Shown: one piece after another, positions 23,050 to 29,622 of the stretch
How positions within the stretch are numbered: the first letter of the stretch is position 1
How the letters are laid out: each line of letters begins with the position of its first letter
Assembly: GCA_033442325.1 (NCBI GenBank)
Contig: JAWQFM010000018.1
Span: forward strand, 760,617-824,616
Reading direction: 5' to 3'
DNA from: Salpingoeca rosetta
Lineage: Eukaryota > Protista > Choanoflagellata
Length of the DNA stretch: 64,000 nucleotides
Notes under the pieces: model-generated
Told to the model about the DNA's origin: nothing
The model's database searches: none
The model's input: only the letters and a program-made list of their open reading frames with translations
Made by a program: the position numbers and the translations under genes

Positions 23050-24748
23050 GGTTGTGCGCTGTTCGTCGTCGTGCACAACAGCAGCAGCTTCCGCAAACCG
23101 CCGCGGTCTACGACAGCACAAATAATGTGCAAACTCACACTGCGGAAAAACAAGTTTGATCGTGTTTGAGCGCCGATTGCGCAAATACAATTGAAACGCC
23201 ACCACACAAAATGCGCGTTTCGCTCCACAGGTCTGAAGTGATTATTGGTGGAAGATTTCCACATGATTCCAAAGGAGCTTGGTCAACCGCAAACCCATTT
23301 CGATACAGCGTTGTGTGGTGTTGAGGTTGTGTCGAGCTTGTAGAGTCTGTGGGGCAGATGGACGCCGTCCCACTCGGGTTCAAACCGCGTCTGCACCGCA
23401 TTTTTTCCCACCCCACAAACATACCACCTATTCCAACCAACAGGGGGCGCCACTCTGCCCCACAACCGTCCAACACCTTGCCGACGTTTGTTTGTATTTC
23501 GCAAAGGCACGCCGTCCTGTCCTCCTTGCTTGCTTGACGCGACCTCGCTCTCGCACAACACTCAACCCACCAACCAAACACAAGGCGCAAACGCGAGCAA
23601 CGCACAGCTGCTGTGTGCAGCGAGGCAACCTACCACGCCCTCTTTCCCTCAGCTCTCTGTCTGTCTCTGCCTCTCCCTCCCCCTCTCCCTGCTCGCCCTT
23701 GCGACCTTCGTCACCACATTCCCCAACAGCAATAAATATAAATACAAACACAAACAAAGCACAAACCTTCGGGGCAAGAAGTGGGACACACTGTGTTTAC
23801 TTCTTGTTATGTGTGTGCCTTCGTTGGCGTCCTCCCCTTTCCGTCTGCCTTGCTGATTCTCCCATGCCCCGCCCACCAAAGCACCGAGGTCCGGCATGAT
23901 GACCACAACTGACCCACGAGTTCTCCCATAACCACACCTTGAACACCGCACAACGTGTTGCCGACAGCACGATGTCGACAAACCCCACCCAACAAGCCAG
24001 CCAGCCACCACCACGCACCGACCTACCGCATTGCGTCTGGGTTTGGCTTTGTTTGGCTTGCTTGGCTTTTTGTTTGTTTTCCCCCCCTCCTCCTCCTCGT
24101 TGCACGCTGTTGATGGTGGTGCTGGTGGTGCTGGTGGTGCTGGTGCGGTCTTCTTCTTCTTCTTTTTTTTCGCCTTCCCCCCCTTCCCACCTCTTCCGTT
24201 CGTCTTCACACTGACCGCCATCGCAGTGGCGTCGCTGTCCTTGTTTGTTGTCTCTTCTGCCTCCGCCTTTTCCATTCACGCGTTCTCGCACCTTCCCTCT
24301 CTCCCTCCCACCACCCACCGATCGATCGACCGGCAAGCAAGCGTGTGCATTCTTGCTTCGTGTCCACGGATCCTCTCAGCGCACCCCCCTGCACCAGCTA
24401 GCTGATCCAGCCTCGACCGTGTCTCTCCCTCCCACGCACCTTCCTTCATCCTTCATCCTTGTTGTCAGATCCCGTGTTTGATCCGCGATCCGCGATCCCT
24501 TCCCCCCTCCATTCCCTCCCTGTCCTGTTGTCGATCTCATCACAGCGACAGTCCTCCTTCCACAACATAGTGCCCACTGTCACCGCCCCCCCCCCTCTGC
24601 ATTTGCACTGCGGTTCCTTGTCCTCTCATCGACTTCTTTCTCCATCTCTCAGTTCTCTCTCCCCGCCCCCTCGCCTCTAGTCCCTCCACGTCGTCCTCCT
24701 CTTCGTCGGCAACACCACAACACACCCACCTCGACTGTGTCCCCCACG

Positions 24749-26896
24749 ATGCCGCTCCTGCACTCACAGCATCGCAGCAGCGACGAAGCCACGGGCCGCC
24801 CACCAACGCCCACCAACGACGCTGGCCTGTCTGCCCAGCCACCGGCCTTGCGCCTCAAGGCTCCCCTCCACGAACGTCGCATGGCAAAGCCCCTGAGTGT
24901 TGGCCTCGTCGTTCCCACAAACGCGGAGCAGCGCCGCCCTTCCTTCTCAGACTCGTACCTCTCCCCAATGTCGGCGTCGTCGGCCACCACCTCCGCCCCG
25001 CCCTCTGCCTGGTCGTCGGGGTCCGTGTCGTCTTCCTTGGACAGCACCCCGTACTCCCAGCGGTCAAGTGACGTGTCTGCACTCTCCTCCCCGCCGCAGG
25101 GCTGGGCCAACCCCTCCACCTCAAGCGCAAATTACCCTTCCACGGGCGTCGACTCGAGCTCCCTCGCATCCATCATCAACGACACCTTGCTCGGCGACTT
25201 CTCCTCCCTGCCAACCTCAGGTGCGCCTCGCTTGCATGATTGCTTTGCACCGTCAAAGAAGACCCAGAAGAGGAAGAAGAAGAACTGAAGGAAGAGCGAG
25301 ATGATGAAGAAGATGATGAAGAAGAAGGAAGAGCGAGAGTAAGAAGAAGAACGAAGAGCGATATAATGAAGAAGGAAGAATGATATGTTGATGATGAAAG
25401 AAGATAATCATGAAGTGCCTGCCTATTCTGGTCACCCTTTGACCTGTGTGCTCTCCTTTCCTTTCTTCACTCATTCTCACCATTCCTCTCCCTTGTACAT
25501 AAACACACACACGCCTTTCCCTCACATCTCCAACCAACCAACCAACCAACAGACGACGGCTTTGCGCAGTGGGGCTTGCCGTGCGAAATTAGCAACCCTC
25601 AGCTCAGCAACCTCATGACGCCGGCCTCAGACTACCCACAGCAGCAGCAGCACCACCACCACCAGCATCATCCCGAACACGACGTGATCACCACCACGTC
25701 CTCCTTCTCATCAAGCGCGTTTCCCAGCTTCGCCCACTTTGACAGCGCCGCCACCCCGCTCGCCTCAGTGGACAAGGACAGCTTCGTTGCGCCCCACTTG
25801 TTCCACGACGCTTCAGACCACCCAGGCACAATCAGCAGCACCTCCACGACAACCTGCAACAGCACCAGCGGCGCATACATCTCGAGCAACAACGCCGCCA
25901 GCGGCTGCAGCAGCAGCAGCAGCAGCAACGACGACAAAGGTGATGCCTACAATGTTGGCGGGGACCAAGACAGTGTGCAGGACATACTCCAGTGGCTCAA
26001 GCACGACGCCCCAACGGCAAACCTTGCCCTGCCAACGATGGGGCCCCGCTTCCCCAACGCGCCACCACCAACGCGCAGCCCAAACCACCCGTCATCCTCC
26101 TCCACTTCAACGGGTGATGCCGGCAAGCATCGTGACTCCTCTTCCTCTGCTACCGCGCAGCCACCAATGCTTGCAAGCACTCACCCACGCAGCGGCAGCA
26201 AGCCCGTCGCCAAGCGGCAGCGCCGCAAGTCCGCGGGCAGCAGCAACCCAAAGAACAAGAGCAAGCGCTCATCCTCAGCCTCTACCTCCTCCTCCTCCTC
26301 CTCTTCCCCTGCAAAAGGTCAGGGCAACATCTACAAGAAGCAGTACACAACACCAACCCGCTCGAACCCGCGCCGCACTTCGCACGTGCGGACCCGTGGC
26401 GCCGTCACCACCACCACCACCACCACAGCCAAAATCCAGGACCGTGCCCTCTCTGGCGAAGGGCAGCCGCCCCTCAAGGTGGCCAAGATCGACTCCCGCG
26501 GCTCCTGCAGTGACACCGAGGGTGGTTCTCCGTCTTCCCTCTCCTCCTCCTCATCATCATCTTCTTCTTCGGCATCCACCAGCGCCACTTCCACCAACTT
26601 CACAAGCACGGTGCACAGCGATGCTGCCATGAACTTCTTTGCGGTTCACGCGCAGAGCTGCCCCACCTCCACTATCCCTGCAAAGGATTATGACGTGTAC
26701 TATCCCGAGAACGACAGCAGCGAGGACGAGGACGGGTCCGACGACGACGACGACGACAACGCAATTGACACGGACGATTCTCAGGATGAGGATGAGGAGC
26801 AGCAGGACGACGACGATGACGACGACGAATGGGTGCCTGCAAGCACCGCTCGTCGCAATTCAACAAAGACGAAGAGCACGAGCACGCTGTCGACGG

Positions 26897-26942
<46 letters not shown>

Positions 26943-27126
26943 GAAGAACAAGAAGAAGAAGGCCTCGAAGAAGCGCAAGAGTGCCACCTCCCGCTCGGGT
27001 CGCCCGGGCACCCGGCCCACGTCCTCCAACCAAATTATCTGTCCCATCTGCCACGGCGTCGGCCGCAACAGCAAGCGCAAGTGCGTGCGTGCGTGTGTGT
27101 GTGTGTGTGTGTGTAGTAGTAGTGTA

Positions 27127-27182
<56 letters not shown>

Positions 27183-27804
27183 GAGCCTTTTGCGTTGCCT
27201 TCGCCATTATCTGTGGCTCGCCATGGTTTTCTCCACATGGCTCTCACGTTTGCCCTCTGCTTCTCCTCCCCTGTCTTCACCACCACCAACCAGGATCTGC
27301 GGCATCTGTTACAGTGGCCTGTACAACGATGTCAAGAAGGTGGTCCGGGCAAAGCTGCACTTCCGGCTCGGCAAGGATCCAGTCGCTAACCGCGATGGCC
27401 TCAAGCAAGGTGCGTTCTAAATGCGTTTAGCTGGGATGTTGCCCTATCACACCCATGTGGTGCGGTGTTGGCCGTGCCCATGAAATGTGGGCAACCCTTC
27501 ACGCGCCCACCACACGCCGTTGGCAGCGTGCTTGATCGATTGGTTCCTTATCTTGCTTGCTTTGATTGGGTGTTTGTATTTCATCTCACTGTGTTTACTC
27601 ACCACGCCTCTCACGCCTGATGCGTGTGTTTCATCCATGCCTTCATCAACAGCTCTGAGGAAGCTGCAGCGTGGCTGCAAGCGCAAGTACAAGTGCAAGG
27701 AATCTGCCTGGCGCTACAGCCTTGATCCCGCCGCAAAGTGCACCCGATGCAGAAGCATCCACGTCATCGACGCCATCCCCGACCTGGCCGATATCAGTGC
27801 GTTC

Positions 27805-27885
<81 letters not shown>

Positions 27886-28132
27886 ATGTGTGTGTACATG
27901 TGTGTATGTGTGTATGTGTGTGCATGTGTGCATGTGTGCATGTGTGTGCACATGTGTGTGTTTGTTTGTTTGTATCTTTTTGTGCCCTGCCTTGCCCTGT
28001 CTTGCTTTAGCCTTGTTGCTGCTTCGTCACTGCTCAATTTAATGCTCACTTTGCTCATTCTGGTTTCCTTTTCGCCACCACCTCCCCCCCCCCACTACTT
28101 GCTGCTTTGCAGCCATGTCCTCCTTGTTCTGA
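24749..28132 (+). CDS. S/acidic low-complexity protein with C-terminal 8-Cys double zinc finger; putative transcription factor (exons 24749-25220, 25553-27080, 27294-27409, 27653-27796, 28113-28132)
   Basis: Phase-consistent GTGCG donors and CAG acceptors give CPIC-x11-CGIC-x41-CKRKYKC-x14-CTRCR, preceded by basic KKNKKKKASKKRK. The last exon is uncertain (alternative acceptor at 28137). Confidence 0.75.
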
Positions 28133-29426
28133 GCCAGATCTACCAGCCCATATGAACCAACAGCACTATTTTCCTCCTCCCAAGTCGTCGTCATCCTCCT
28201 CTAACACACTCTCCCTCGTCGTGACACGTGCGTGCAACCGCCCACGTCTCGACCCCCAAGATTGCCAGACGTTCGCTCCTCGTCCTGTGTTATGTTCCTC
28301 TCTACCTCCACGCCCCACGTGTTTGTGTTTTTGTTTGTGTTTGTGCCGTCTGTGGTTTTGACCTTTAGTGAGAGGATTCTTCCATCTGCCTCAGCTCCTT
28401 CCACCTTCTGCTGCTGCTGCTGCTGCTTCATATTTGCTGTTGTTCTTGTGCTGTGACACGCGCGATGGTGGCCGTGTTGTTGCAGTGCACCCATGTACCA
28501 ATACGCGTGAAGTGCACGACATTCAGACGTGCTGGCGTGTGCTCGTGGTGCCGAGCTCCCCACTTCACCTCTTCTCCGTCCCTCCTCCTTGGGGGGAGGG
28601 GGTGCCTCCTTCTTGGGCTGTCGCCCAGTTTGCACTCTCCCTTTGCACCACCTCTCCCAACTTCTTCCCCTGCCCCGTTTCCCAGTCGTGATAGCTGTGT
28701 ATCTGCGTTTTGCCTTCCGTTTCGATGTTCGTTTCACGGCAAACGCATCGCCTATGTGAGTGCTACCGGTTTTGCACTGATCTCGTTTGCAGCGCTGCAC
28801 GTGCTTTTCTACCGCTTGCGCTCGTTCCTGCCGTCTCTTGCGCACACGATTCTCTTGTTCTTGACCCTTTTTCGTTGACCTTTCTTTGATCTCTGCTTTT
28901 CATTCGATTTGATCTCACAATGATGATTTCTCCCCGCGTTACACCCTGCCTTCTTCGGCCATGCTTTCGTTATCACCTGCCATATGCGGCAGACACACCA
29001 CAACACGATTTTGAGTTTCTCTCTTTCTTAGCTTATTTTCTTTTTTCCTTGCCTGCCTTATTTTTGCTTTGTTGGTTCGCGTTGCCGCGATCACACACCA
29101 CGTGCCAGTTGCACGACGCACGAGTGTTCTTCCGTTGCTGGTTTATCTTTGTATTGGGTGTCTGTGCCTCCTCTTAGAACTCTGCACCGTCATTTAGCGC
29201 ATGTGCACATGATTGTGGCAAGTGGGCGTTGCTTTCGTTCCGTAGTTCATTGATGCAACCATTCGGCTTACCCCATTGAAGCAACGACAACAACGACAAC
29301 ATGTGCGTGACTGATGCAAGCGCGAGGCAATGTACCACGAATCCAAGAGGGTTTGTGAGTGTGTGTGTGTGAGTGTGTGTGTGTGTGTGAGTGTGTGTGT
29401 GTGTGTGAGTGTGTGTGTGTGAGTGT

Positions 29427-29502
<76 letters not shown>

Positions 29503-29522
29503 TTTAATTATAATTTTTTTAT

Positions 29523-29622
29523 NNNNNNNNNNNNNNNNNNNNNNNNNNNNNNNNNNNNNNNNNNNNNNNNNNNNNNNNNNNNNNNNNNNNNNNNNNNNNN
29601 NNNNNNNNNNNNNNNNNNNNNN
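29523..29622. other. Assembly gap (100 N)
   Basis: Run of N. Confidence 1.

Follow-up and report, generated by a model that had tools for sequence, protein, structure and literature searches.

The analysis described here concerns a 64,000-nucleotide stretch of the genome of the choanoflagellate Salpingoeca rosetta (contig JAWQFM010000018.1 of assembly GCA_033442325.1, positions 760,617 to 824,616 of the forward strand), the whole of which is referred to as the window and whose own numbering is used for the gene found in it. In our assessment it is likely that the window carries the four-exon 3' part of a gene belonging to an unnamed family that is limited to choanoflagellates, and that the encoded protein ends in a predicted nuclear receptor-type double treble-clef domain, which is probably DNA-binding. 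That this is an undescribed zinc-finger family is well supported, and its best-supported description is that of a new family in which a receptor-type double treble-clef architecture, as seen in predicted models, is combined with an insert of ~25-30 residues and with a C-terminal helix.

As the original prediction, which was made from the letters of the window, had proposed, the domain becomes apparent only when three exon pieces are joined across two introns, both of which are of the GT..AG type and have no counterpart in an intronless paralog or in the transcript of an ortholog, where the coding sequence is contiguous. The product of the large open frame at 25576-27420 (+), in which the earliest ATG in frame occurs at 25615, is of low complexity and rich in Ser, Thr and acidic residues, and the predicted basic run resembling a nuclear localization signal (NLS) is indeed found behind this region, where it reads KKNKKKKASKKRK. 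It is followed by the stretch SGRPGTRP, at the place where some relatives have an AT-hook-like RGRP, and this basic arm may serve as an NLS or as an AT-hook. The first exon then supplies Cys1 (codon 27040-42) and Cys2 (27049-51) within CPIC (27040-27051), exon 2, which translates as ICGICYSGLYNDVKK...GLKQ, supplies Cys3 (27298-300) and Cys4 (27307-09), and exon 3, reading LRKLQRGC-x5-C-x14-CTRCRS..., supplies Cys5 (27676-78), Cys6 (27694-96), Cys7 (27739-41) and Cys8 (27748-50) and the Arg (27751-53) which follows it. After splicing, the window copy has the spacing C-x2-C-x11-C-x2-C-x41-C-x5-C-x14-C-x2-C-R, the same as that originally claimed. The resulting C-terminal domain of ~105 residues is preceded by a disordered Ser/acidic region and the basic arm, and it ends the protein, with no ligand-binding domain C-terminal to the Cys modules. 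The absence of such a domain had also been predicted, and Pfam scans of the large-exon frame of the window and of the full frame of the paralog on contig C13 did not list the ligand-binding domain family PF00104, the other relatives having been scanned over their domains only. The position assigned to the end of the protein, however, requires a correction, as it does not lie in exon 3: a third intron and a last exon of 20 nucleotides have been added, because the same donor motif is present (GTGCGT is the donor of all 3 introns) and because of the C-terminus of the ortholog. The C-terminal ends of relatives read ...ATMRTLFG and ...SMLWTFFGS, as compared with ...TMSSLF in the window gene.

The exons are established by comparison with relatives, and the comparative support for the gene model, based as it is on aligned sequences, is strong. 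The ortholog of the window gene is a complete open reading frame (ORF) from the transcriptome of Microstomoeca roanoka, designated P0002, which groups with a protein of Salpingoeca infusionum in a phylogenetic tree (support 93/91). P0002 is contiguous over all 3 junctions, with the same spacing at the first of these, an identical ..LKQAL.. at the second and a matching C-terminal tail at the third, and the predicted splice junctions are in agreement with this transcript. In translated searches (tblastn), its identity to the window gene is 69% over exon 2 and 58% over exon 3 as opposed to ~23% over the remaining protein, a difference which points to purifying selection on the domain. No public protein with the domain of the window copy was returned from two protein collections, though five S. 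rosetta paralogs were, and the domain of this copy can for this reason fairly be called hidden. The coordinates of all features of the gene are given in Table 1.

Table 1. Features of the putative zinc-finger gene in the window (positions in the 64,000-nucleotide stretch).
Feature	Position	Strand	Description and support
Large exon 1	25576..27080	+	Ser/Thr/acidic low complexity, then basic run, then CPIC; open frame; colinear alignment with the Microstomoeca ortholog
Basic NLS-like run	26941..26979	+	KKNKKKKASKKRK; ~20 residues before Cys1; basic arm recurs in relatives
Intron 1	27081..27293	+	GT..AG, donor GTGCGT, 213 nucleotides; ortholog transcript and intronless paralog contiguous with the same spacing
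Exon 2	27294..27409	+	Cys3-x2-Cys4 at the predicted start of helix 1 (CGICYSGLYNDVKK...), then first part of the predicted helical insert
Intron 2	27410..27652	+	GT..AG, donor GTGCGT, phase 1; junction ..LKQ|A|L.. identical in the ortholog transcript
Exon 3	27653..27796	+	Putative second zinc module: C-x5-C (27676-27696), x14, CTRCR (27739-27753), predicted helix 3, invariant Pro
Intron 3	27797..28112	+	GT..AG, donor GTGCGT, phase 1, (GT)n-rich; inferred from the C-terminal match to P0002 and P0003
Last exon	28113..28132	+	20 nucleotides; rest of a Thr codon, MSSLF, TGA; end of the predicted C-terminal helix

Because intron 1 is in frame and has no stop codon, frame finders pass over it as if it were coding. 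(GT)n microsatellites occupy introns 1 and 3, where they translate as long CVCV runs, and (GT)n/(CA)n repeats also surround a run of N at ~29420-29550, which is either an assembly gap or withheld sequence. A Ser-rich open frame of 183 amino acids at 24737-25288 (+), which precedes the large exon, ends in KKTQKRKKK and may represent an additional 5' exon or belong to another gene.

The existence of a family is established by searches of the S. rosetta genome (55.4 Mb), for which exons 2 and 3, then the paralog and then a family profile were used as queries. With the exons and the paralog, the same pieces were found in the same order at many loci, and the 29 exon-level matches of the family profile, when taken together with those from the paralog search, make up at least 17 loci, which are located on contigs C1, C3, C7, C8, C13 (two), C18, C20, C25, C28, C30 (two), C33 (three), C34 and C36. 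The profile recognizes the window gene itself with E values of 1.1e-5 (exon 2) and 1.1e-13 (exon 3). The positions of the introns between the four pieces recur across paralogs, and in two of them, viz. the copy at C13:1454033-1454383 and a divergent copy on C25, the domain is present without introns. Over the domain, PTSG_12352 is identical to the copy on C13 that has no introns, and another copy of the family corresponds to PTSG_05628. The public model of the latter (C13:1015122-1015592) runs on past the exon with C-x5-C and misses the downstream genomic CTRCR exon bearing Cys7-8, and another public model, PTSG_07689, begins after the first CxxC knuckle. The two copies on C30 (460368-460484 and 485108-485224), which have identical profile scores and are ~24.7 kb apart, look like a recent segmental duplication.

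Outside S. rosetta, a search of 1.84 billion representative proteins with the family hidden Markov model (HMM) at E<=1e-3 gave 34 matches, consisting of 21 in 11 named species, 11 without an organism name (metagenome or Logan proteins) and 2 from bacteria. All 11 named species are craspedid choanoflagellates (Microstomoeca roanoka, Salpingoeca rosetta, S. infusionum, S. kvevrii, Choanoeca perplexa, C. flexa, Hartaetosiga gracilis, H. balthica, Mylnosiga fluctuans, Monosiga brevicollis and Barroeca monosierra), and no animal, filasterean, ichthyosporean, fungal or acanthoecid member was present among the 34 matches. The named entries are described as 'hypothetical' or 'uncharacterized' or bear transcriptome ORF identifiers, with one M. 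brevicollis entry labelled as a fibronectin type-III domain protein. A word search with the paralog domain gave no match and one with the ortholog domain gave only itself and P0003. The two bacterial matches have repeated CxxCxGxG units and align to finger 1 only. One secreted-looking, bacterial-like sequence of 451 amino acids (P0021), in which eight CxxCxGxGRDSWGxxCxxCxGxG units occur in tandem, gives the only strong match from outside the choanoflagellates to the finger 1 part of the profile.

Conservation within the family was examined in 24 full domains of 23-56% identity (alignment A6), which were used in place of MAFFT alignments of the short exon pieces, as the latter stacked all of the CxxC motifs and were dropped. 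The original prediction depended on the Cys residues being conserved in homologs, and all eight of them are invariant in 24/24 domains, as are a Tyr after Cys4 and a Pro located ten residues after Cys8, while an Arg is present right after Cys8 in at least 90%. The Cys pattern is, from the alignment, far beyond chance, because the eight Cys are invariant across homologous domains as divergent as these. The spacing in the family is x2, x10-13, x2, x34-51, x3-6, x5-16 and x2, with the C-x5-C knuckle present in 18/24 domains and the x14 loop before Cys7 also in 18/24, and its consensus includes CxxCYxGLYNDIxK and CTRCRxLA...P, in which the Arg after Cys8 alone is shared with the receptor core motifs. 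Every domain is basic (net charge +3 to +16, pI 8.4-9.9), and in the relatives too a basic arm, at times AT-hook-like (RGRP), precedes Cys1. The two residues between Cys3 and Cys4, which are equivalent to the receptor P-box, vary among the members, as would be expected if these positions set the target specificity.

By sequence, the family is not a member of zf-C4 (the Pfam family PF00105 of nuclear-receptor DNA-binding domains, or DBDs) or of any other curated family. For comparisons with known families the window exons were searched one by one, and the intronless paralog and the Microstomoeca ortholog domain (P0002:505-623) served as contiguous proxies. Nothing in Pfam scored above its cut-off for the window exons, the C13 paralog or the 24 family domains, and PF00105 (gathering cut-off 21.1 bits) was not listed for any of them even at E<=10; when used in a six-frame search of the S. 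rosetta genome, it detected two other loci and 0/17 of the family loci. The most frequent sub-threshold Pfam matches concern finger 1, and they are to DZR_2 (PF18912) in 14/24 members (best E 0.0023, below the 27-bit cut-off) and to DnaJ_CXXCXGXG (PF00684) in 3/24 members (best E 0.057, finger 1 only). In a search of PDB sequences with the family profile, the matches within E ~0.03-0.06 were eS31 zinc ribbons (E 0.03, to finger 2) and FKBP12.6, and no nuclear-receptor chain was among them; a single paralog used as query gave bL32 only (E 0.74). A protein-language search of the ESM Atlas yielded no usable match. Together with the lack of a functional name in the relatives and of any paper on the family or its PTSG identifiers in a literature search, the absence of a Pfam family at cut-off bears out the alternative, put forward at the outset, of a zinc-finger family not previously described.

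A different result was obtained from predicted structures. Two AlphaFold2 models were made, of the intronless paralog from a shallow alignment (model 1; predicted local distance difference test score, pLDDT, 88; predicted template modelling score, pTM, 0.80) and of the ortholog domain from a 24-row alignment (model 2; pLDDT 92.5, pTM 0.83; all five models >=90.6). In the N-terminal half, both have a short hairpin at Cys1-2, a long helix starting from Cys3-4 and an extra helix in the linker; the C-terminal half consists in both of a loop with C-x5-C, a helix from Cys7-8 and a C-terminal helix past the invariant Pro. When these models were compared with the PDB using Foldseek, nearly all of the matches for both were nuclear-receptor DBDs (USP, EcR, RXR, TR, COUP-TF, GR, ERR, TR4, VDR, LRH-1 and Rev-erb), with a best template modelling (TM) score of 0.66 by target. 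VIA-align, which is independent of Foldseek, was used to compare model 2 with 48,161 representative chains, and in this case ranks 1-11 were all occupied by nuclear-receptor DBDs (Z 5.9-6.9), with rank 12 at Z 4.9. In these eleven superpositions 69-83 residues are aligned (69-77 in ten), corresponding to ~95% of the DBD, at 14-19% identity, and the root-mean-square deviation (rmsd) is 2.2-2.9 A in ten of them and 4.2 A for 4nqa_I. Realignment of the list from Foldseek gave Z values of up to 7.7 (76/80 residues, 2.6 A) for receptors and 3.0 for the best non-receptor, and in a shape search of the ESM Atlas, zf-C4 clusters were the only rows with TM>=0.5. The receptor DBDs are the nearest solved folds for these models, in keeping with the suggestion that the fold would be that of zf-C4 and not of LIM, GATA or FYVE. 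LIM, GATA, FYVE and RING readings were rejected, as none of these appears in any fold search.

The predicted fold is in this sense established, and a double treble clef with two helices packed crosswise is found in the predicted models, with moderate absolute scores that are weaker for model 1. The helix starts in the models, together with 14-22% identity in the full-length superpositions, suggest that two zinc ions would be held by the invariant Cys in sequential order, one by Cys1-4 and the other by Cys5-8. Each module would then be a treble clef whose second CxxC caps a helix, and the two helices would come together in a single globular unit, as they do in the nuclear-receptor DBD, with a helical insert of ~25-30 residues in place of the short inter-finger linker and a basic helix after the invariant Pro. 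Zinc binding, a nuclear location and DNA binding are all putative. The most likely function would be that of a nuclear DNA-binding protein, for which the fold, the basic domain with its basic arm, the disordered and activation-like N-terminus and the expansion of paralogs all speak. As a nuclear, sequence-specific DNA-binding module, the domain would direct helix 1 towards the major groove, with the basic N-terminal arm and the C-terminal helix assisting in DNA contact, and regulatory or activation functions would reside in the disordered N-terminus. The label 'transcription factor' is to be understood in the same putative sense.

Several considerations weigh against this reading. All of its structural support comes from predicted models, and AlphaFold training included receptor DBDs, so that any C4-C4 pattern may be mapped onto them. 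The Foldseek E values are about 1-3 for both models, and a Z of ~7 is, by the aligner's own note, within the range reached by the best unrelated hits. For model 1, the helical MCM9 N-terminal domain (Z 6.2) ranks above the receptors (Z 5.0-5.6), with FF domains alongside. The sequence methods (Pfam, the PDB profile and the ESM Atlas) tie the family to no DNA-binding family. Further, at the helix 1 positions occupied by Lys and Arg in the receptors, the family has the invariant Tyr and an Asp, which is acidic, and the helix may, in the models, be partly covered by the insert, so that the mode of DNA binding could be different or DNA binding could be absent. The junctions of the window copy, finally, all have their support from comparison with the intronless paralog and the transcript-derived ortholog.

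The likeness to receptors should not by itself be interpreted as showing that the family and the nuclear receptors are specifically related. The view that the family shares true common descent with the nuclear-receptor DBD goes beyond the reading favoured here, rather than against it, and we put it forward tentatively, as something possible though doubtful. According to it, a stand-alone double treble-clef DNA-binding domain in the choanozoan ancestor would have given rise to both the family and the animal receptor DBD, a derivation that we would not at present expect to prove correct; on the animal stem, the DBD would have acquired a ligand-binding domain by fusion, giving the nuclear receptors, whereas choanoflagellates would have kept the unfused, long-insert form and expanded it independently into a transcription-factor family of ~17 genes. 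Such an ancestry would account for the same order of the Cys ligands, which are putative in the family, for C-x5-C in module 2 (in the 18 domains noted above), for CxxC then Arg at the start of helix 3, and for the superposition, at 2.2-2.9 A, of almost the entire receptor DBD in an unbiased search in which receptors take the first eleven ranks, and it is congruent with the position of choanoflagellates as the sister group of animals and with a published report of Pfam zf-C4 alone in choanoflagellates (PMC6792448; cited in PMC8942334). Against it, PF00105 is not listed at E<=10 for any of the 24 members and misses all 17 loci genome-wide, the PDB-sequence profile returns eS31 and FKBP (E ~0.03-0.06) and no receptor, and hhalign gives a probability of 0.2% between the family and a zf-C4-like domain on contig C23. 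Further, CEGCKGFF-RR and KCL-x2-GM are absent, the hydrophobic register after Cys4 is off by one residue, the linker has 34-51 residues as compared with 15-17, and loop 2 mostly has 14 as compared with 9. The named members are all craspedids, with no acanthoecid, filasterean, ichthyosporean or animal protein returned, a distribution that fits an origin inside choanoflagellates, and treble clefs are known to have arisen repeatedly through convergence. The original proposal of a divergent relative of the receptor DBD is thus borne out as regards the predicted fold and not as regards the sequence.

If the resemblance arose by convergence, the domain could instead be a zinc-stapled helical module for protein-protein or RNA binding, which we regard as unlikely. 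In its favour are the top geometric matches of model 1, which are zinc-free helical bundles (the MCM9 N-terminal domain and FF domains, Z 5.3-6.2), the DnaJ-like CxxCxGxG of finger 1 with its weak DZR_2 and DnaJ_CXXCXGXG matches and its counterparts in bacterial repeat proteins, the weak likeness of finger 2 to the eS31 ribosomal zinc ribbon, and a helix 1 that is not basic. However, the whole domain is basic in all members and is preceded by an NLS- or AT-hook-like basic arm, a long Q/S/acidic disordered region joined to one small basic zinc domain in ~17 paralogs is a typical transcription-factor architecture, and for model 2 all folds other than those of receptors score 1 Z unit or more below the top 11 receptor DBDs. 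It is very improbable that the pattern is an artefact, i.e. a chance arrangement of Cys from unrelated open frames or a dead pseudogene. Although the failure of public collections to return a protein with the window copy's domain would be in accordance with this, and the in-frame, stop-free intron 1 makes an unspliced reading formally possible, the comparative data already contradict it: the four pieces recur in the same order at the 17 or more loci and are contiguous in the two intronless paralogs and in the transcriptome ORFs of other species, the domain exons are far closer to the ortholog than the rest of the protein is, and GTGCGT is common to all three donors. The favoured reading, of a choanoflagellate family whose domain has a predicted receptor-type fold and is probably DNA-binding, bears on a wider question, that of the origin of the nuclear receptors and of their DBD. 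The full receptor is not known outside animals.

The earlier premise that this kind of domain is animal-specific is partly outdated, as zf-C4 alone has already been reported in choanoflagellates (PMC6792448). This brief report of zf-C4 matches was the only previous hint on the origin of the DBD, and the family described here, conserved and multigene, present in the sister group of animals, with eight putative zinc ligands and a predicted receptor-like fold, is a concrete candidate bearing on it. If the fold and DNA binding are true, it would represent either a pre-animal relative of the DBD or a clear case of convergence on a double treble-clef DNA reader; in either case a sizeable lineage-specific family of regulators would be added to choanoflagellate biology, and if common ancestry is true, the receptor DBD would be older than animals. 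Surveys of holozoan transcription factors that are based on domains omit the family, because current gene models miss or truncate most of its copies. S. rosetta can be edited by CRISPR.

Among known systems, the published hint concerns Pfam zf-C4 alone in choanoflagellate proteins, where it is stated to predate animals, with no proteins named (Lopez-Escardo et al. 2019, PMC6792448), and the report of a stand-alone choanoflagellate zf-C4 is repeated in PMC8942334. The two loci detected by PF00105 in the S. rosetta genome are not family members, and for this reason the published hint and the family are different things. One of them, at C31:210311-210472 (+), is a stretch of 79 amino acids that matches zf-C4 with 25.6 bits (above the 21.1-bit cut-off; E 1.8e-5) and keeps about half of the eight Cys, in an open frame of 134 amino acids, upstream of which no knuckle is obvious. 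Either decay of a former copy or chance may explain this match, and hits of its kind may lie behind the published statement. The other, at C23:207872-208033 (-), is the N-terminal domain of an 886-amino-acid open frame (16.7 bits, E 0.01), which has receptor-like CTYCIKFF and RHCFGCLYQRCLDVGI, lacks part of the second set of Cys and is followed by a long tail of low complexity; as a bridge between the family and the receptors it was rejected on the hhalign result given above. These two loci resemble the family in being stand-alone, receptor-DBD-like and without a ligand-binding domain in S. rosetta, and like it they bear on the pre-animal origin of the DBD. However, they match the zf-C4 model of Pfam and lack several Cys, whereas the family keeps all eight and does not match that model, and no similarity between the loci and the family was found with the family profile on the genome or, for C23, with hhalign.

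Finger 1 of the family, with CPxCxGxGR...CGxC, resembles the knuckle pair of the zinc ribbons and DnaJ-type fingers (PF18912, PF00684, bL32 and eS31), which are linked to the family by the sub-threshold matches described above, among them those of DZR_2 (best E 0.0023), eS31 (E 0.03, finger 2) and bL32 (E 0.74). These matches, however, are below the curated cut-offs and involve one module only, the second Cys pair in the family models caps a helix, as in a treble clef, with no beta-ribbon, and folds of this type are absent among the top structural matches of model 2. GATA and LIM, which belong to the 'glucocorticoid-receptor-like' folds, also consist of treble-clef C4-type modules, some of which bind DNA, but GATA contains a single module, LIM, whose ligands are C2HC+C4, lacks long helices, and neither was in the top 50 of any structure search.

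The closest comparison is with the nuclear-receptor DBD itself (PF00105, 'double treble clef zinc finger, C4 type'). Its spacing is C-x2-C-x13-C-x2-C-x15-17-C-x5-C-x9-C-x2-C, and its core motifs are the recognition helix CEGCKGFF(K/R)R and CR-x2-KC-x3-GM. Neither the family nor the window copy has the canonical spacing, and of the core motifs the Arg after Cys8 alone is shared: the family, which has no match to the PF00105 HMM, has a linker of 34-51 residues with a predicted extra helix in place of one of 15-17, loops of 10-13 and mostly 14 residues in place of 13 and 9, and CxxCYxG(L/V)(Y/F)ND in place of CEGCKGFFRR, with no KCLxxGM. The family also differs from the nuclear receptors in having no ligand-binding domain, in the usually C-terminal position of the zinc-finger domain and in its occurrence in choanoflagellates instead of animals. 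With these differences, the two have in common a basic domain with eight Cys, which in the family too would form two sequential C4 modules, in both of which a CxxC knuckle is followed by a CxxC at a helix start, together with C-x5-C in module 2 and the Arg directly after Cys8; in the predicted models they superpose over ~95% of the DBD at 2.2-2.9 A, and the predicted C-terminal helix of the family is placed in the same manner as the extension of RXR and TR.

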